This document shows, one piece after another, positions 53-13,330 of a stretch of 64,000 bases of DNA; within the stretch, counting starts at the first letter, position 1; every line of letters begins with the position of its first letter. The position numbers were made by a program, and so were the translations under genes. This DNA is from Adineta vaga (taxonomy: Eukaryota > Animalia > Rotifera): positions 8,494,001 to 8,558,000 of the forward strand of contig CP075497.1 in the NCBI GenBank assembly GCA_021613535.1. The letters are read 5' to 3'. The notes under the pieces were generated by a model. It was not told the origin of the DNA. It did no database searches and worked only from the letters and a program-made list of their open reading frames with translations.

Positions 53-3000
53 CAACATGATCTTTATAAATATGTTCAAAGTCGAAATCAATTGACTCCA
101 CATATTTTTTGGATTGCTGATCAAGCTTATCGAAAACTTTGTCTATCGAAACAAGCACAATGTATTGCTGTTTCAGGCGAAAGTGGAGCGGGTATGATTG
201 ATAGCTTTTTTTTATTCTCACTAATTTCGTTTTCGAATAGGAAAAACGGAATCAACGAAACTTATGGTTTCACATATCATTCATTGTTCTGGAGATGCAG
301 GTGATCGTGAATTACAAAATCGAATTATTGAAGTTTGTATTCGAACAAATAAAGCTTTTGAAAAAATGGTCATTTTTTTTTGTTCATATTGATTTGTAGA
401 CATCACCATTATTGGAAGCATTTGGTAATGCACAAACGTGTATGAATCAAAATTCCAGTCGTTTTGGAAAGTATCTTCAATTAAATTTTACCGATACGGG
501 TCGAATTGTTGGAGGTAAATTTACTATGGTAGTAATTGATAAAAATAAAGTGTTGACATTTATCTTCTAGCGAAAGTCTATGATTATTTACTTGAAAAAT
601 CTCGTATTGTTCAACATGGTCCTGGTGAACGTACATTTCACTTTTTTTATTATCTTTTTGCTGGTTTGGAAAAAGAAGCTTTAGAATATTTCTATCTGGA
701 TGATCCAGAAACTTATCGGTATTGAAAATTTTGTTTGTTAACAAGAACATCTATCACAACATTCATCTATTTCTAGAATTATGAAAGATTCATGTGGAGG
801 AAAAGTATTTCCTAGTCGATCAGATTTTAAACATTGTCGACAAATGTTTAATACACATAAAGAAATTATGCGAAGAGTGGGATTTACTGATGAAGTAATG
901 CATTTCTTTTTTTCAAAGTTAAAATAAGAAAGGAGTAAACACATATATTCATTTAGGATATTAATATGGTATTTACAATACTATCAGCAATACTTCATTT
1001 AACAAATATTCGATTTTCACATGATGATGAAACAGATGGAGTTTATATTGAAGATGAATATCCTTTAGAAGTTGGTAAGTGATTTAATTACGCGTTGTGA
1101 AAAGTAGATGGAATTTATTAATTTGAGTTTATTGCTATTTTTAAAAAATCGAACAATATATATCGAATCTTCTCTGTTTATTTATAGTATGTACTCTTCT
1201 TGCACTTGATCAAGAGATTCTTACAATGGCTCTTATATCAACATTTAGTATAACAAAAGGTATATTATTCTGAATAATCTTAGAAATCTTCTTCAGTTGA
1301 TAAATGATTTTATTAGGTGAACGTGTCATTAGTTTAAAAAATTCTGATCAAGCTAATGATTGTCGTGATGCATTAGCTAAAGCTTTGTATGAACGATTAT
1401 TTTCATGGATTGTTAAACAAATAAATACACTTTTACAACCAAATCGACGGTAAGTTTCTTTAGTTTTTCAAAATATTCCTTTATTCATTTCTTTCTATTT
1501 CATAGACATAATCAAACTGATGATAATATCTATCGTACTTGTTCAATATTAGATATGTCAGGTTTTGAAAATTTCCAAGTGAATAGTTTCGAACAATTGT
1601 GTATCAATGTGGCAAATGAACATCTACAGTATTATTTCAATGAACATATTTTTCTACAAGAAGAACAAGATTATCGAACTGAAGGTGTTCCATGTGAAAA
1701 AGTTGAATTTCAAAATAATGAAGATTTAATTGAATTATTCATGGGTGTAAGTTCTAATTATTTTTTTTTACATTTTTCAATGTTCTATTAAATATTAGAC
1801 ATTGGGAATATTTGCATTGCTTGATGAAGAATCTCGTTTTCCTAAAGCAAATGATGAATCACTCGTACAAAAGTTTCATAGTCATTGTAAAAATCATCCA
1901 CGATATATTAAACCACGAGGCAATGAAACAGCATTTGGTATCCATCATTATGCTGGAAAAGTAAGAGAATAATCTAGAGAAAAACTTTGAATAATAATCA
2001 TTTTGATTTAGGTTGTCTATGATGCTCGTGGACTTTTAGAAAAAAATCGAGATAATCTCAGTGCAAATTTAATTGAGTGTTTGGAAAAGAGTGGAACGGA
2101 ATTAATTAGTTATTTATTCACTGTTAATGATGATATCAACAGTCCGCCTGATACCTTTGCATCATCAGCGTAAGAAAATAATGCTCTTCAGATCAATTCA
2201 GTTGTTAATACACAAAACAAACATTCAACGCATTCTTTCTCGAATAGATTTCATAATTGAGTTACATACCATATCTAATAGAAATCAGAGAATCAACATA
2301 TCATTAGTCTTTGGACATTTATGTTTGTTTACCAAACGAATCTCTCTCTCTGTACACGCAACACTAGTGAAGTCCTACATAATTCTAAACTCTTATAGAT
2401 CATTGATTCATATGACTCAATCATTGAATGAAATTTAAACTCTCTAATTTTGTTCAATAATCTTCGGAGGAATATAAACTAGTCTATATCGATTGAAACA
2501 GATTTGTTTTAAATATAATATTTAGTTCACCATCTGGAACAACAAACAAATTAAAAGCAGGCTCACTTCATCCGTTGCGTCGTCCAAAATCGTATGATAT
2601 TGAACGTACGAAAGAGAATTTCAGTCAAAAAACGGCGAAATCACTTCGACAAGAATCGTATGTTATTCGTGATGATTACATCAGAGAAAAACAAATTTAA
2701 ATCTCTCAAACTTTTTATTATTATTATAGACGACCATTCAAAGCTAATACAATTCAAAAGGAACGTTTCAGTCAAAATACAGTTGCACTTCATTTTAGAG
2801 TAAACAAGATATCTTTAAGAAAAATATGTTTATTGAAAATTATTCTTCGTTTAGAATTCATTGGCTGAATTACTCGATAAAATGAAAGATGCTGAACCAT
2901 CTTTTGTAAGGTATGTAAAATTCATTATTGCATTAATGCACTTGTACTACCTTTTTTCGTGACAATACAAAAAGAAATTGTGTCCGAATCAGTAGGAGTC

Positions 3001-6000
3001 AAAGGCTCAGTATTTGTCACATGTGTAGTTAATTAAGCTCGATGTTTTTTTTTGTTCGTACGACGTGCTTGGATGATGGTTAATTGTGATGGATGTAATA
3101 GATCTATTGTATGTATCAATCTATCGATTAGTTTCGAACGATGAGTATTGAAGTCATCATTTGATATTTATGAATAATTCGTATGTCTTCGAACGAATAT
3201 GTCGAACTTTAATTTGTTTTCATCAAAAACTGATTTGAAAAAATTCTTATCTAAAACTGAAAAAGTTCTGTGTTCAAATGATTCGTGGCAAGATCTATCT
3301 GGTATAACTTCAACATTAACATTTGATAATACCAGCTGGAAAAGTGTTCATCATTACACAACACTATCGAAAGCATTTGGTCTCGATGATGAATCAACAG
3401 GTTATTGTCGACTAGATCGAGGAGGACATTGGCTTCTGCGATCACCTCCGCCACTTCTCCATAACGATGCAAATAAAGTCGTAACATATTATGATAAAAA
3501 ACGTTTATCAAGAGATTCAAATACACAACGAACATTTCCCGATTCATTTGAAAGTTTATCTGTTTCGATTAATTTCAATGTACCAACTGATCAACTGTTG
3601 ACAAGTATGGATGGTAGTTATGGATACAATGAAGTGATTTGGAGAGATAAATTTCGACAATATCAAAATCTATCATCTGATGATACTTGCAGGACATCGA
3701 GGTAGATGAAAAACGAATTCATCATATCGTAGTATTGCCCATTAGAAAGACATATCTTAAAGATATTGAGAAATGAAATAATCTTACTCGTATTATTACG
3801 ATTCCTACAGTAATAGTATAATTCAGAATTATGATTATAGTTTGTAAACACGTTATACTCCTTTGAATTTTTATCTACAGATGTATTAAACCAAATCATG
3901 GTAAAGTAGCAAATCAATTTGATGAAGAATTAGTTCAAGAACAATTACGTTATAATGGTATTTTGGAAATATCTTACATAAGAAATCAAGGTTGGCCAGT
4001 TCGTTTTACATTTGAAGAATTTTTCAAACGGTTAGTATATTTTCATCTATTAAATTACATTTTATTTTTCTAATCTTCGTCAATAGATATAAATTTATTT
4101 CTTATCCTCAAAGCAGTCCAATAAGAATCAATGGAATAACATGTGAAAGAATTTTCAAAGATTTATCTTTAACTGAATATTTGATTGGAAAATCTAAAGT
4201 AATAAATTATTTTTCTTTCTTTTTTTTCATTTGATCATATGAAAGAAACAATTTGGTATTCGTAGGTATTTTTGAAATTAGAACATTTGGAAATATTGAA
4301 TCAACATTATGAAAAATATATGTCCAATATAATTAAATGTCAAAAAGTAGTGAAAGGTTTTCTTGTACGACGAAATCTCCTACGTAAAGCAAAACAATAT
4401 GCTAATGAACGACATAGTTTATTAACACATGTACATTCAACTGGAAAACGAACAATTGAAAAACTTATTTCATTACCAAAAGTAACGACAATTTTTCTTT
4501 GTAGCATGATTTCTGTTAGATTCGATGGAATTTATTTAGATTTCACCAAAAAATATTAAGAAAATATTACCGAAAGCGGATGGGAAAAATGGACGATCTG
4601 GTCATTTTATTAAGAAGAAATCTAAAGATCAAAAGAAGATCGTAACAGATGTATCAGATCGAATAACAGAACAAGAGCATGAGGAAATGCGTCGTGTAGC
4701 GAAAGTAATAATTTATTTCTTTTCAAAAAAAAGAGAAACTTTTAATTATCACCATTCTTATAGAAATTACAATTGCTCGATCAAGATGAAATCGATGAAT
4801 TAGATAATGGCGATCATCAAGTCGCTTTATCCCATCAACCTGTTTATGATATGAAGATATCAGATGGTTTTAAATCATCATTAGAAGGTTTGTCAGAACG
4901 TGAAGTTCGTATTCTTGTTCAAGATGAATTTACACCGAATACAAATAAACCAGGTCAACATAAAAATCGTCCTGATCTTGAAGCAAATATTCAGTTCGGT
5001 TCAGGACTACCTGGTACAACAACATCACCACCACCAGATAAACCGTTAAGAGTACATGATGGTGCATTAGCTATGATGGCTGCAAATATACCTATTGCAC
5101 CAACAATGAGTTTAACCACGGCAGAGCAATTAATTCGAGAGACAAAAGTTGCCGGAACAAGTGGCGATTTATTTATGACTGGTAAAGATTTTTAAAGAGG
5201 AAAAAAGTGTATATATATATATATATTTATGTATGATGATTAGATTGGGAAGTTGGACCAGAAGATAAGAAACAATCAAGACCAGCACGTTCAAAATCGG
5301 AACCAAGAAATTTATTAGCTGATTTATATGATGAAAATATGTTATCAGAACAAAAACGTGGCATGGTCAAGAAAATTCTTATGTTACAAAGACAAAAATT
5401 CAGAGATAATCAAGCACGTAAAACACGAAAAACTAATGATTTAGAAAATTCAACTTATAGTTTTGGTTGTACGAATCAATCATCGAAAAATGATGATGCA
5501 CAACCATTATTTGAAGAGTATTAACTCATTGAACCAATGACATTAGTACGACTATATTTCTTTTTTCTTTAGAGATAATTTAGAATGTTGGGACGCAGCT
5601 AGAACAATGAATGTTCAAGAAGCATATGAAAAAACAATACATTGTTATCGTCTATCAATGCGTTTATTAAAAATTGCTACATATGTTGCACTAAATATTG
5701 GTGTATTATTAACAGCACTTGTTAGTAAAGGAGCGTTACTACTTATGACGAACTCGGTGGCTAAAGTGCAAGAGGTAAGCAAAAACTGAACGAATCAATC
5801 TATTTCATACTCCTCAATTTGTTTCAGACACCTTATCAAGAACGTTGGGTATGGATGTTATTGATATCTGTATGTGCTCCATATATTTTTACATTCGTGG
5901 ACAGTTTTGGTAAATGTTTATTTGGGAACAAACCATGGCCAACTGTAAAGATTTTTACTGTTGTATGTTATCCTTCAATTGATGTCAAATAATTTAATTT

Positions 6001-9000
6001 TTTGACATTTTTATTCCTAGGTGTTTTTTATCGAAACTTTGCATAGTTTTGGTATAGCAATATTTGTTTTTCATATATTACCAAAATTAGATGCAGCACG
6101 AAGTTTATTGATAATGAATGCTGTTTGTCTTGTACCGGCCTTTTTGAAACTCTTTTTGACGAAATCTAATTCTTCAATTGTACGACGAAGTCTTCTTTTT
6201 CTAATGGATTTTTTTGCATTTGCTATGCAATGTTCATGTGTTGGAATTGCATTAGCATCGAAATTTCTCAAAAATGATGGTCCAATTACCATTTCCACCA
6301 CAATATCATCATTATTTTTACCAACAACTACAATTCCACTTCCATTATTAAATCGGCATCGACGACAAGACGAATTTATTGGTGGTAATGTAGACTTATT
6401 AAGTCCTGCCATTGGAGGAAATAATGACAATTTCATATTCACAACACCTGCTAGCAATATGAGTTCAATTGATCAAAATCTACAAACAATTCTAGGTGGA
6501 TTTCATATTGAATGGGAATTACCAGTTGCTTTAATACTTGTTTCACTTGCTTGGTAAGTTGATATTGTTGAAAAACAGACATGAAATTCTGTGTATGCTT
6601 GTTTTTCTTCATAGGTGGGAGAATTTTGTTGATCGCGATATTAAAATTGGTGGTCGTACATTAGTTCATATGAAATTATTAAAAGAAAATATTATTGCAA
6701 CACGATCAAAAACATCGATTATAATGACCTGTTGGAAAATTATTGTTACTGTTCTCTTTGCTTATATCTTTCATCATGGAATCTTCAATACATCTGTTGT
6801 TTTTCCAACGAGTAGCAATAGTGAACAATTAGAAGATCCATTACCAAAACTATCATCTGGACAAAATTCTTGGGCAGCATTAGGTTTTGATCAACAACCA
6901 TCGCAAGGAATGTTTCCAATTCTACCACCACGTGAACGTCGTTCTATTGAAAACACTTCCGCATATATAAGACGTCATAAAAGACAAATGGAAGGCGATT
7001 TACCATCGAATTATGCATACGATGATGAATCAGTGAATTCAATGGGTGGCGGTGGTGGTGGAGGAAATATGCAAGGTCCAGAACCACCAAATCCGAAGGA
7101 TCGTTGGATTATTTATTTAACTCCGATGATATTGAAAGTGATATCAGATGCTTTATGTTTCTATATGGGTCGATTGGCATGTAAGCTTTGTATGCAACGA
7201 ATATGTTTTGCTTTACCAATCACATTAGTAACACCATTAGCATTAACAATATTACTTGTCATGTGTTCTGTTGCACCTCAATCGACAGTATTTATTGAAA
7301 ACTTTCTTTTTTGGAGTTGTTATGCTGATTATGCGAAAGAATCATTTAAATGGCAAGTCATTTGTGGTCTATTTCTTTGGTGGTTATCGGAATTGTGGAT
7401 TGGTGGACATATTTGGTTTGGTAAAAGTCAACGTTTAGCATTTACAGAACGGTAAATAAGTTTATCTAATCGATTGAAAAGAAAATATCCGATAATTCTC
7501 TTTCAGTTTATTTGTTTCACCACGTTATTGTGCGACATTACTGGAACAATCACTGATGATGAATCGACGTCGGAATGAACGTGATGAATTATTAGGTGCA
7601 GCGTTTGATGAAATGGGCACGACAACAAATGGTGAAACGGAATTCGATGAACAAAGTATTGAAGAATTATCAATGGAAAAGAAATTAAGTGCTGATGTTC
7701 ATACAAAAATCTATTCCTGTGCAACAATGTGGCATGAAACTGAAACTGAAATGTTACAATTATTGAAATCAATCATGAGGTATGCTTAATTTTTCTGCCC
7801 GACAAAAAGATCTTCAAATTTGTTTGATTATGTAAAACATGATACGACATAAATCATTATTTTAGATTGGACAGCGATCAATGTGCTCGTCGAACAGCTC
7901 GAAATTACTTACATTTAAAGGATCTAGATTATTATGAATATGAAGGACATATTTTCTTTGATGATGCTATGGAAGAAGATGATAATAATGAACAAGTACC
8001 AAACAAATTCGTTCAACAATTACTTGGTGTTGTCGATCGTGCTGCTACGTATGTTTTGATTTCTTTTCTTATTTGTTTGTATTTTATCAATTTAAATATA
8101 TTCAATAGTGCTATTCATCAATGTCCGATGAAAATTCCACCTCCATTTAAAACTCCAACACCGTATGGTGGTCGATTAACATGGGTTTTACCAGGTGGAA
8201 ATTTTCTCATTGCACATATCAAAGATAAAACAAAAATTCGACATAAAAAACGTTGGAGTCAAGTAAGTAACTGTATTTGTGGTATTGTAATTTTCTTAAG
8301 ATGAATATTTAGGTTATGTATATGTACTATTTACTTGGTTATCGTTTATTTGGTGATTTGAATATCATCGAAAAATTGTATAAGAGAAAACGTAAAAAGA
8401 ATTCATCGAAAAATAAATCGAAATTATTCAAAGGATTTGGAAATTTACTTAATAATATGGATAATAAAAAACGAATACAAGTAAAGATATTTTGTTTTTC
8501 AAAATAAAGAATTGTATCGATTACAAAAATGTATTTTTCATTCTATAGATGGAAAATACATATCTGTTAGCACTTGATGGTGATGTAGATTTTCATCCAG
8601 AAGCTGTTCGATTACTTGTGGATCGAATGAAGAAAAATAAAAAAGTCGGTGCTGCTTGTGGACGTATTCATCCGATTGGAAGTGGTATGATCTTTCTACC
8701 AAATCCAAAGAAGTTTTTCTTTGTTCTTATTTATGAAAACTATTATAGGTCCAGTTGTTTGGTATCAAAAATTTGAATATGCTATTGGTCATTGGCTTCA
8801 AAAAGCAACGGAACATATTTTAGGTTGTGTGGTAAGTCAAGAATTTATCTAGTTGATATGAAAAGAATACTTTTTTTCTCTTTTTGTATAGATGTGTAGT
8901 CCAGGTTGTTTCAGTCTTTTTCGTGGTTCAGCATTGATGGATGATCATGTTCTTCGAACATATTGTACGAAATCATTGGAAGCTCGACACTATGTTCAAT

Positions 9001-11757
9001 ATGATCAAGGTCTTTTTTTCTTTTTTGGAAAAAAAAAGTATTCTCTTATATATTCTGTTCTATTCTAATAGGTGAAGATCGATGGTTATGTACACTACTG
9101 TTACAAGAAGGTTATCGAGTTGAATATTGTGCTGCATCAGATGCATTGACTTATGCGCCAGAATCATTTCATGTTTGTTATAACTTAATATCTTAGTTTG
9201 AAAGAGAAAAAGTTTAATCTCGCTGAATTTTCTAGGAATTTTTTAATCAACGTCGTCGATGGGTACCATCTACAATTGCAAATATTATTGATTTTCTTGC
9301 TGAATATAAAAGAATTGTACTTGTCAATGACAGTATCTCATATCTATATATTGTCTATCAACTTTTTCTAATGGTTTCAACAGTTCTCGGTCCAGCAACA
9401 GTACTTCTGATGATTATTGGTGCATTCAATGCTTGTTTTGGTATGTTTACACTTTTCTTTCTATATTTTCTTTCAATGGACTTATTAAATTACGATTTTT
9501 GTATAGGTACAAGTCTTTGGCAATCGATGTATATGTCTGTTTTACCTGCATTCTTCTATCTTCTTCTATGTTTTCATACTACAACTGATTTTCAAATACG
9601 TGCTGCTGCTTTCTTTTCTGCTGTTTATGCAATCATCATGATGGCTGTTATTGTTGGTACAACGATTCAAATTGCAGAAGATTCTTGGACTTCACCGAAT
9701 GCAGTGTTTCTCATGTTGCTATTATCCATCAATTTCATAGCTGCTTGTGTACATCCACAAGAATTTTGTTGTGTTATTCCAGGTTTACTCTATTTCTTGT
9801 GTATACCAAGTGGCTATCTATTTTTAATTATTTATTCACTCTGTAATCTTAATATTGTTTCATGGGGTACGAGAGAAGCACCGAAAAAAGTGAAAAAAAA
9901 TCAAAGCAAAGAAGAAATTGAACGTGCACGATTACAGGAACTAACACAAGTGAAAAAGAAATCTGCAGGATTTTTCAATCAAGTAAGAATATTTAATGAC
10001 TTGTAAGAGAAATTCTTATTGATTTATATCTTGTGAAACAAATAAAAGGTATTTGCAAATTTCAATTTTAAAAAATATGATGAACGAGTTCGTACATATG
10101 CACGCAAATGGCTTGGACTTGAACGATCTGGATTGAATGGTATTCTTTTGAAACAAATCCTCGGTGCTATGGAACGAATGGAAAAAGTAATTTCTTTTTG
10201 ATTTTCCATGTTTGAAGATAAGAAATTTGTTTTCAGCATAAATATGATGAAGAAATGGATGCTTTTGCAACACAAGGTATCTATCCGCCAACAGGTAAAA
10301 CACAAATGGGATCTGAAATTGATGCGAAATATGGTCTATTACAATTGGCAGCACGAGCGGCCACTCCACAAACAACTAGTGGACCAAATACTCGTGCTAG
10401 TTATCCACAAATAGATTCTCAACAACAATTAATTTATCGTGGACTTAATAATGCACGAAGTACACCCTATGGACAAATCATGTCCTATGCAGGAATATCA
10501 TGTGCAATTGAATCGCCACAAGTAGTGATTAAACGTGATGAATTAGGTGAGTATTTGTAAATTGAATTCATCCTTATACGTGCTATATTTTTTAGTTAAT
10601 CCTGCATGGATATTTCAAGAATCATTACAAGATTCAAAAGTAGTAATGCTTGATCCACGTGAAGTGAAGTTTTTTCAAGATGTTATTGGTCGTTATTTAT
10701 ATCCATTAGTTGAAGATAAAGATCATCAAAAAAAGATGGTCAGTGATTTGAAAGGACTTCGTAATAATTGTTGTTTTGTCTTCTTTATGCTCAATACTTT
10801 ATGGATTGTAATTATCTTTTCTTTTCAACTCGTTTCTGAACGTATTCGTGATTATGTCTTTATACCAATTAAGCGTTTACATAATGAACCGTTACGTTTT
10901 GAACCATTGGGTTTCGGATTTTTAGTTTTCTTTGCAAGTATTTTATTGGTACAATTTATTTCGATGTTATGGCATCGATATGGAACATTATTACATTTAT
11001 TAGCATCAACAGATTTAAAACTTGCTCAAAGTAGTAATGGTAAAATGGACTTGGTCATCGACGTGGAGATTTCACGATGGATAATGTTGAAGATGCTGTT
11101 GCACAAGTAAAAGTTTTACAAGGACCAAAAGGTTTTCATGCTGAAGATTTACCGGAACCAGATTATGATCTTGATCTCGATGATGATCGACAAGCAACTG
11201 AACCTGATCTATCAACAACAGGTCTTGTGTATCATACTAATGCACCACGTTATATTAAAAATTCGACTTGTACATCACAACAATGGAGTGATATAGCAAA
11301 AGTGAATGATATGCAACGAAATTTAGATACAACTGATCATAGCGATATCAGTCAAATGTAAGATACCGTCTTATTCTTAAGTTTTATTCAATAAATAAGT
11401 TTGTTGTTTAGGGCTGGTTATATCTCAGGTTCAGTTAAAACATATGGTAGTAATTACGAAGCTATCAAAAAACATCAAATATCGAATAAACGTCATTTAT
11501 ATAATAAATCCTTGGATCATGTTTTTAGATCTCGTTATCATGCATTAACACAACAACAACATCAACCACAAAAGAATCCACGAGCTAAATTAACAGATGT
11601 CTTTCAACAACAACAAGGTGCTTTACCTCGAGCTAGACGTACATCAAGTGCATTAACAGTACGTGATAGTGTCAATGGTGCTAATCATAATCATCAATCG
11701 GCGATCATGAAAAAACATCGAAGGAAATCCAAAGATCGACACTTAGAACATTTGTAG
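53..11757 (+). CDS. Myosin motor domain-chitin synthase fusion (myosin head + IQ-like motif + about 10-TM region + GT2 chitin synthase + C-terminal TMs); multi-exon, 5' end outside window
   Basis: Spliced myosin motifs: [12 protein letters not shown]-loop GESGAGKTES, LEAFGNA, switch I NSSRFGKY, switch [31 protein letters not shown]-like [15 protein letters not shown]. In-frame continuation to chitin synthase motifs [51 protein letters not shown]. Stop at 11755-11757. One apparent frameshift near 11042-11045. Confidence 0.95.
3199..3701 (+). CDS. Putative alternative first coding exon of the chitin synthase gene, nested in the 970-nt intron 2911-3880
   Basis: 167 open codons from ATG 3199, ending AG|GTAGAT (phase 2). 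The constitutive upstream exon ends in the same phase (GTA AG|GTATGT). Both join the acceptor before 3881 to read R-C-I-K-P-N. Confidence 0.65.
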
Positions 11758-12183: not shown

Positions 12184-13330
12184 ATGCTTTCAAATCAATA
12201 TCAAAAAGTTCTTTATGATGTTTCTTCTCATGATTTTCGAATTCTTGATGATGATCATGAATATAAAATGACAAGCGAAATTAATAAATCAATATCTTCA
12301 TCATCATCATATCATCAGATCTATTGGTCAACAGTCGCTGAATCAGGTTTAATCACTCAACAAGTAAGCTTGTAAGTATTCAACTATTTCTATCGAATTC
12401 TTATTGAACATATTTCTAGAATCGTCTTATTTACAATTCTGTTCGTTCATTTGAATTCAAATGATCTTCAACCGACGAATATTTTAATTGTCAATGCATT
12501 GATTGGTATCATAGGATTATTTCTTTATCGAAGACATATTAGTATAAAATTATGTAAGAACCAACTGTTGATTATTGATTCTTATTGGAAACAATACTTA
12601 TTTTAGTACAAGAAAATTTCAAAACATTATCAATTTTTCTTCTATTTGGTTCTTTGGTATCACCTGTTGTATTTACTTTAACAAAAACTATTAGTACAGA
12701 TACAATTTATGCTATGAGTACATTAATGATGTTAACTCATTTGATATTTTATGATTATGGATCGGAAAGTGCAATGTAAGATTGTTTGAATATCAAATAT
12801 CTATATTGATCGATCCATTATGAGAATATTTAGGGTACAAAAAGCATTATCATTCAGTGTAGCTTTATTTTCATCTGTTTGTCTTGCATCACGTTTATCT
12901 ACATCGTTTCATACATTTTGTTTGGTTACATCAGCGGTATTAGTATTTGCCCTTTGGCCAGAATTACGAAAATATATCAAAGTAATGAAAAACAAAACTC
13001 TATTAAGATTGTCTTGTATCTTTTCTTTTTATTTAGGAATCAAGTTTTGGATTGTTTTCAATCTTAACTGTTGTACATATATTTGCATGTGTGATACTCT
13101 TATCTCGTCTTTCATTGTTACATACAATTCTTTATTCATTAGCAATACTCTGTTTAACATTTCTCTGTCCATTATGGCTTGTTTCATTACAGAAATATAA
13201 AATGTATGAATGAAAATTTTGTTCAAAAAAACTCGAATTTATCTTTTTTTCTCTCAATTTCTTTAGATCAATTCGTGGTGCATGGGAAGAAGCTGTTGTT
13301 CCAGAACAAATAAAAGATAAATTTGCATAA
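12184..13330 (+). CDS. PIGC: Phosphatidylinositol N-acetylglucosaminyltransferase subunit C (GPI2), 6 exons
   Basis: YQKVLY N-terminus, TLTKTISTDTIYAMS, SVCLASRL, multiple TM segments, C-terminal IRGAWEEA (cf. IHGPWDEA). All splice phases consistent. Confidence 0.9.

Follow-up and report, generated by a model that had tools for sequence, protein, structure and literature searches.

One locus of the bdelloid rotifer Adineta vaga very probably encodes two chitin synthases with different N-termini, one headed by a myosin motor and the other by a leader whose start codon lies inside a long intron late in the motor region; from the homoeologous copy on chromosome 3 (C3) the motor has been lost. 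The locus lies on chromosome 6 (C6) at the edge of the window, by which we mean the whole analysed stretch of 64,000 nucleotides, its start codon falling ~230 nt upstream of the latter (C6:8493769). The comparative evidence makes it highly likely that the short, motor-less form exists. The relevant features are as follows (positions are those of the window; a slash marks an exon border):

53..2910, + strand: motor exons 3-16 of the myosin-chitin synthase; 644 aa, open frame.
2855..2945, + strand: last motor exon with its phase-2 donor (2910/2911) and the conserved non-coding block after it; also kept on the motor-less C3 copy.
2911..3880, + strand: predicted intron of the long isoform (FV-R / CIKPN); 970 nt, phase 2, holding the putative alternative start.
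3119..3131, + strand: conserved non-coding 13-mer ATCTATCGATTAG; in relatives it precedes the leader ATG by 55-133 nt.
3199..3701, + strand: putative alternative first coding exon (leader); 167 codons plus 2 nt (AG), phase-2 donor CGAG/GTAGAT.
3702..3880, + strand: predicted intron of the short isoform; 179 nt, its junction matching public gene models.
3881-4030, 4087-4198 and 4266-4481, + strand: shared exons with the RCIKPN strand, SH2-SH1 helices, converter and one IQ-like motif.
4540..11757, + strand: shared tail, membrane region and chitin synthase; motifs DGD, EDR, QRRRW and SWGTRE.

The motor-synthase gene and its surroundings

The motor frame on C6 is intact to EPSFV, with no stop in 644 aa, and holds the P-loop GESGAGKT (aa 102), switch I (NSSRFGK, aa 155), switch II (DMSGFE, aa 388) and the relay (aa 400); the exon at 1507-1743 matches Pfam Myosin_head. 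From RCIKPN onward the exon model comprises 25 exons and 2,146 aa, stop-free and with the chitin synthase motifs included. PF23000 is matched by one window exon, and PF03142 by the Rotaria homologue. Window exons were searched singly and joined exon models served only for counting; the modelled products measure ~2,790 aa (long) and ~2,310 aa (short). An IQ-like motif had been claimed downstream of the junction: a match is present, but it is weak, its Pfam E-value being 0.0025 and its score 17.9 bits against a cut-off of 20.3. Mollusc, annelid and rotifer myosin-chitin synthases are class-36 myosins according to a published survey (PMC5583752), and on this basis and that of its architecture we assign the gene to the class-36 myosin-chitin synthases. 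As in these and other lophotrochozoan MMD-chitin synthases, one chain would combine the motor, an IQ-like neck, the membrane region and the GT2 chitin synthase.

Several features of the gene and its neighbourhood vary between copies. The loop-2 region of the motor (2127-2800) has a ~60-aa insert, encoded by two additional exons that follow a 356-nt intron; the insert is shorter or unmatched at the bdelloid loci L008, L010 and L022, and in Rotaria the intron becomes 2-3 kb long. A GTPase gene, which we take to be Rab8-like, precedes the motor start by ~1 kb (C6 ~8491500-8492800) and is common to C3; its place is occupied by a TBP gene in L010. Just 3' of the synthase, at 12585-13200, lies a PIG-C (GPI2) gene that is present in Rotaria sp. 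Silwood1 and unmatched at the corresponding place in the C3 homoeologue. The genome has at least three further chitin synthase loci (C2:5617364, C3:12164365-12165007 and C6:3031706-3032348), two of which form a C3/C6 pair.

The leader exon and its conservation

Introns of the gene number 40 with a median of ~58 nt, and apart from the 970-nt one only two exceed 100 nt (113 and 356 nt). The long intron is bounded as originally described: a phase-2 donor at 2910/2911 (AG/GTATGT) after EPSFV-R and an acceptor at 3880/3881 before CIKPN. The first-pass annotation had also reported in it an ATG-initiated reading frame ending at a donor compatible with the downstream acceptor, and this too is borne out: the frame occupies 3199-3705, and its donor at 3701/3702 has phase 2, the phase of the 3881 acceptor. 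Splicing from 3701 to 3881 takes out the TAG stop (3703-3705) and yields ..TSR-CIKPN. The join falls at about position 583 of the 679 of the Pfam motor, with every catalytic motor motif upstream of it, so that the short form lacks the nucleotide- and actin-binding parts of the motor and has the neck and tail. As to the statement that upstream acceptors lead into stops, within the window the nearest in-frame stop lies 24 nt 5' of the ATG, and no open phase-2 AG comes between this stop and the ATG; the frame of the AG at 3131 is the right one, but two stops interrupt it further on.

The leader has no match in Pfam or the ESM Atlas, and AlphaFold gives no confident fold for it, predicting disorder except for one hairpin at residues 70-80 (mean pLDDT 50.5). 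Its conserved islands are the N-terminal 20 aa, motifs around W30 and W47, the hairpin (aa 70-80) and an acidic FPDS block. The tryptophan motifs, DSW-Q-D-L and W-x-x-hydrophobic, presumably resemble ATG8- or adaptor-binding motifs.

About 40 homologues of the leader were recovered, most of them sharing the start Met. A word search returned 23, at 37-61% identity, with M1 invariant and mostly ending in Ser/Pro-Arg; in a profile search, 22 of 1.84 billion representatives matched, 21 of them leader-like, the species-named ones all being bdelloid, from Rotaria and Didymodactylos. One candidate homologue of 2,655 aa (P0037) was dropped as a repeat artefact, and a region search with the divergent Didymodactylos leader gave no match. 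Hence the leader, at first described as an orphan, is not one: it occurs bdelloid-wide, with homologues in named bdelloids, and to judge by these searches it seems confined to them. Wherever the flanking DNA is long enough the CIKPN exon follows the leader, and in copies with a motor the EPSFVR exon precedes the leader; its length is 143-200 codons, or 314 in Didymodactylos, and all copies are open. Conserved position and phase together with a dN/dS below 1 had been proposed as tests of the exon: position, start Met, donor and phase are indeed conserved, and dN/dS has a median of 0.38 over 91 pairs and approaches or exceeds 1 in some close pairs, a pattern that fits a disordered chain with conserved islands. 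On one Didymodactylos contig of 2,262 nt (L028) the leader and the CIKPN exon are in divergent orientation, probably through an assembly artefact; in another assembly (L029) they are in order.

Public gene models, which are predictions, begin with the leader, join it to RCIKPN and continue into the synthase in four cases: CAF3445896.1 (Rotaria sp. Silwood1), CAF2139091.1 and CAF3863342.1 (R. magnacalcarata) and CAF1178927.1 (D. carnosus).

Non-coding blocks near the start are conserved as well. The block after the motor donor is degenerate in the window, reads TATGTAAAT.TCA in relatives and is variable in reading frame; the sequence past the FVR donor was also considered as the conserved end of a motor-only protein, a candidate rejected on the ground that its frame shifts between species. 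The last motor exon (2855-2910) is unusually well conserved as DNA, even between species in which synonymous sites elsewhere are mostly saturated, which suggests a regulatory element inside the coding sequence. The 13-mer ATCTATCGATTAG is exact in 12 of 13 loci and has 35 copies in the genome against 3 for the reversed control; it may be a candidate promoter element or factor-binding site, the acceptor of a 5'UTR intron or a trans-splice acceptor. We rejected it as a genome-wide DRE-like promoter element: 19 other sites lie largely in coding-like sequence and display no gene-start pattern.

The homoeologous copy on chromosome 3

Chromosomes 3 and 6 of A. vaga are homoeologous (PMC8494291), and the C3 copy of the gene is found at C3:7876950-7887500 on the minus strand (L004, L006 and L007), with its leader ATG at C3:7885482. 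The two regions are collinear from the Rab gene upstream through the synthase into the genes that follow it, but the distance from the Rab gene to the old motor donor is ~0.5 kb on C3 versus ~4.1 kb on C6. None of the 644 motor residues is matched on C3, bar a remnant of ~46 nt from the end of the last exon, together with the donor and the non-coding block; the orthologous motor exons in other bdelloids are mostly 80-100% identical. No second close motor was found in the genome: at 54% identity, the next best match is at the level of other myosins. On C3 the synthase can be read through 2,112 aa with no stop, and its catalytic domain is 96% identical. Since the remnant has been retained, the control region of the short form may extend back to the exon-intron border.

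The shared exons just downstream of the lost motor have decayed. In the C3 SH2-SH1-converter 26 of 63 otherwise invariant sites differ, counting those of a 15-aa deletion within the SH2-SH1 helices, versus 56 of 1322 beyond the neck (p = 9e-7 for substitutions alone), and in the IQ region 5 of 29. Motor-bearing copies change just 1-8 of 64-71 converter sites. The C3 SH2-SH1-converter is 57-64% identical to other copies, the motor-bearing ones being 76-90% identical among themselves.

Because the C3 copy has no motor and yet has the leader and an intact synthase, a leader-started motor-less synthase would appear to have been kept by selection; this supports the view that the motor-less form is viable and able to stand alone. 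The decay of the converter where the motor is gone, in turn, argues that it is the motor that keeps the converter exons conserved, and thereby for a long splice form in the motor-bearing copies. We infer that this form is needed where the motor survives and that both transcripts come from the C6 copy. The presence of the leader in the C3 copy, the C6 copy and Didymodactylos, that is in both homoeologous lineages and a further genus, indicates that the arrangement is older than the bdelloid genome doubling.

A further bdelloid copy has an incomplete motor. In R. magnacalcarata (L032 2866-5420, GCA_905332145.1) the motor starts at residue 303, and the half bearing the P-loop and switch I is missing there. 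L032 also contains, at ~4175-4950, a long inverted repeat that may be a transposon; a second assembly (L033) has a 342-aa motor model. This half-motor copy is possibly an independent partial motor loss, or else a rearrangement.

Two proposed starts, their alternatives and known systems

In the mechanism that we propose, the long transcript would begin at the upstream start, be spliced from 2910 to 3881 and skip the leader, tying a full class-36 motor to the synthase. A second transcription unit would start in or just before the 970-nt intron, probably from an intronic promoter, use the ATG at 3199 and be spliced from 3701 to 3881. In its product a disordered cytoplasmic leader of ~170 aa would replace the motor, while everything from the SH2-SH1-converter stub through the IQ-like neck to the end of the synthase would stay. 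The long enzyme is predicted to be able to bind actin and ATP, and the short one is not. The two forms may differ by tissue or stage, as the switch proposed in the first-pass annotation would require. The hydrophilic leader should face the cytoplasm, like the motor; the short enzyme would get to the membrane or stay there without actin binding of its own, probably through short leader motifs, and the leader may stand in for the motor as a source of binding or regulatory sites, for which the invariant motifs at W30 and W47 are the best candidates. The C3 homoeologue later lost the motor exons and is left with the short form only, a one-sided partition of isoforms between duplicates.

The alternatives differ in how they connect the leader to what lies on either side of it. 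If the gene were split, the motor would be a gene of its own ending in the intron, and leader plus synthase would be the only synthase, with no long fusion made. Rotaria annotations do draw a motor-only gene of 630-657 aa followed by a leader-CHS gene, and no long motor-plus-synthase model was found among public proteins of 673-2140 aa, the only range searched; against this, the EPSFVR donor is in phase 2 at 12 of 12 loci, whereas read-through past it varies in frame and length and yields unconserved tails, and the converter exons, conserved with the motor and decayed without it, behave as expected if they complete the motor. We regard such a split as quite improbable. A splice from 2910 to the AG at 3131 would turn the leader into an internal exon, as an in-frame insertion into the motor or a poison exon, and we hold this to be very improbable. 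The AG does close the highly conserved 13-mer and is in frame with the ATG at 8 of 12 loci (at 4 with stops, at 4 fully open), and the C3 copy retains the upstream donor; at the 8 loci other than the fully open ones, however, the window included, there are stops in frame or the phase is wrong. An open in-frame acceptor before the leader ATG is lacking at 9 of 13 loci (it is open in L008, L010, L013 and L014), protein conservation starts exactly at the Met, and on C3 the leader is open and conserved with no motor upstream, being the sole evident start of that copy. As an acceptor of a 5'UTR intron or of trans-splicing in the short transcript, moreover, the AG at 3131 would agree with two starts. 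The leader is thus best read as a first coding exon and not as an internal coding cassette, though the first transcribed exon may differ.

That the frame is a nested, independent single-exon gene for a 168-aa protein stopping at 3703-3705 has only a very slender chance. It is so annotated in Rotaria sp. Silwood2 (CAF2872103.1) and the stop is found in most loci, but that stop overlaps the donor: in L008 and L010 the donor has GTAT, by which the stop is removed and the donor kept, and the read-through tails are unrelated. The donor reads CGAG/GTA in phase 2 at all 17 full-length leader loci read as DNA, some of which are near-identical pairs, the four bases before the border being fixed as CGAG; that of the Didymodactylos leader is CAAG/GTAG. 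It is the donor that is conserved, and the stop is not always kept, contrary to what an unspliced gene, the refutation envisaged by the first-pass annotation, would lead one to expect; nor does the C3 synthase have another evident start. The chance that the frame is fortuitous, or a transposon remnant in a long intron, is practically nil. The want of a Pfam family, an Atlas match and a confident fold might suggest it, but no transposon is matched, the two genomic copies sit at the same position of the same gene, and the homologues are conserved across genera and display purifying selection by dN/dS; on these grounds we consider this origin refuted.

The preferred reading of two starts in one gene has a close parallel in the headless Myo10 of mammals, in which starts in intron 19 lead to a protein that begins at M644 and lacks most of the motor, the extra exons being 5'UTR or adding at most one Met (PMC5725431, citing Sousa 2006 and Raines 2012). 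In both systems an alternative start would lie in an intron late in the motor and leave the rest of the protein identical. The M644 start of Myo10 falls shortly before the same FVRCIKPN strand. The rotifer exon differs in adding a conserved leader of about 140-310 aa, and its tail is a membrane enzyme, chitin synthase, not a PH-MyTH4-FERM cargo adaptor; the Myo10 form has been shown by RNA and protein, while the rotifer form is predicted here from DNA comparison. As the two belong to different myosin classes, the likeness is likely convergent, and Myo10 a mechanistic analogue only.

Within the chitin synthases, secondary motor losses in spiralian groups B and C are described at gene level, with no route given (PMC3942024). 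In the passages searched of this work and of the survey cited above (PMC5583752; PMC3942024), motor-bearing and motor-less forms are separate genes; here they would apparently come from one locus by an internal coding exon. That the duplicates of a gene may divide its splice forms between them, as splice-form subfunctionalisation, is known (PMC4417111). As in that process, one duplicate would have become fixed for one ancestral isoform after the genome doubling; unlike the reciprocal kind, the partition is one-sided, with C6 keeping both motor and leader and C3 alone having lost a form. No description of a headless myosin-chitin synthase isoform, of this leader or of the C3 motor loss was found in the literature covered, most subscription journals lying outside that coverage.

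A further reading, offered tentatively and rather unlikely to hold, is that the leader is a replacement targeting module: its tryptophan motifs and FPDS block would direct the synthase to vesicle adaptors rather than to actin, start-site selection would determine the site or manner of chitin deposition, and internal starts might be a general path of motor loss in spiralians. Were this so, start choice could separate, for example, the jaws from another cuticle; the C3 copy would be a completed motor loss and the half-motor copy of R. magnacalcarata possibly a second case.

The role of the myosin motor in animal chitin synthases, and the reason for its repeated loss, is an open question. The locus would pair one enzyme with its own motor-less version, and it comes with a duplicate that is motor-less by nature. 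The animal is in culture, has chitinous jaws (PMC5431905) and has a genome assembled to chromosome level; the role of the motor thereby becomes testable by isoform-specific localisation and knock-down. It would also give a concrete route of domain loss, an internal start first and deletion after duplication, and the two-start structure would explain why public bdelloid annotations split the gene into pieces. To judge from the sequences compared, this is an apparently unreported isoform of a known mechanistic type, with a natural experiment on the role of the motor built into it.
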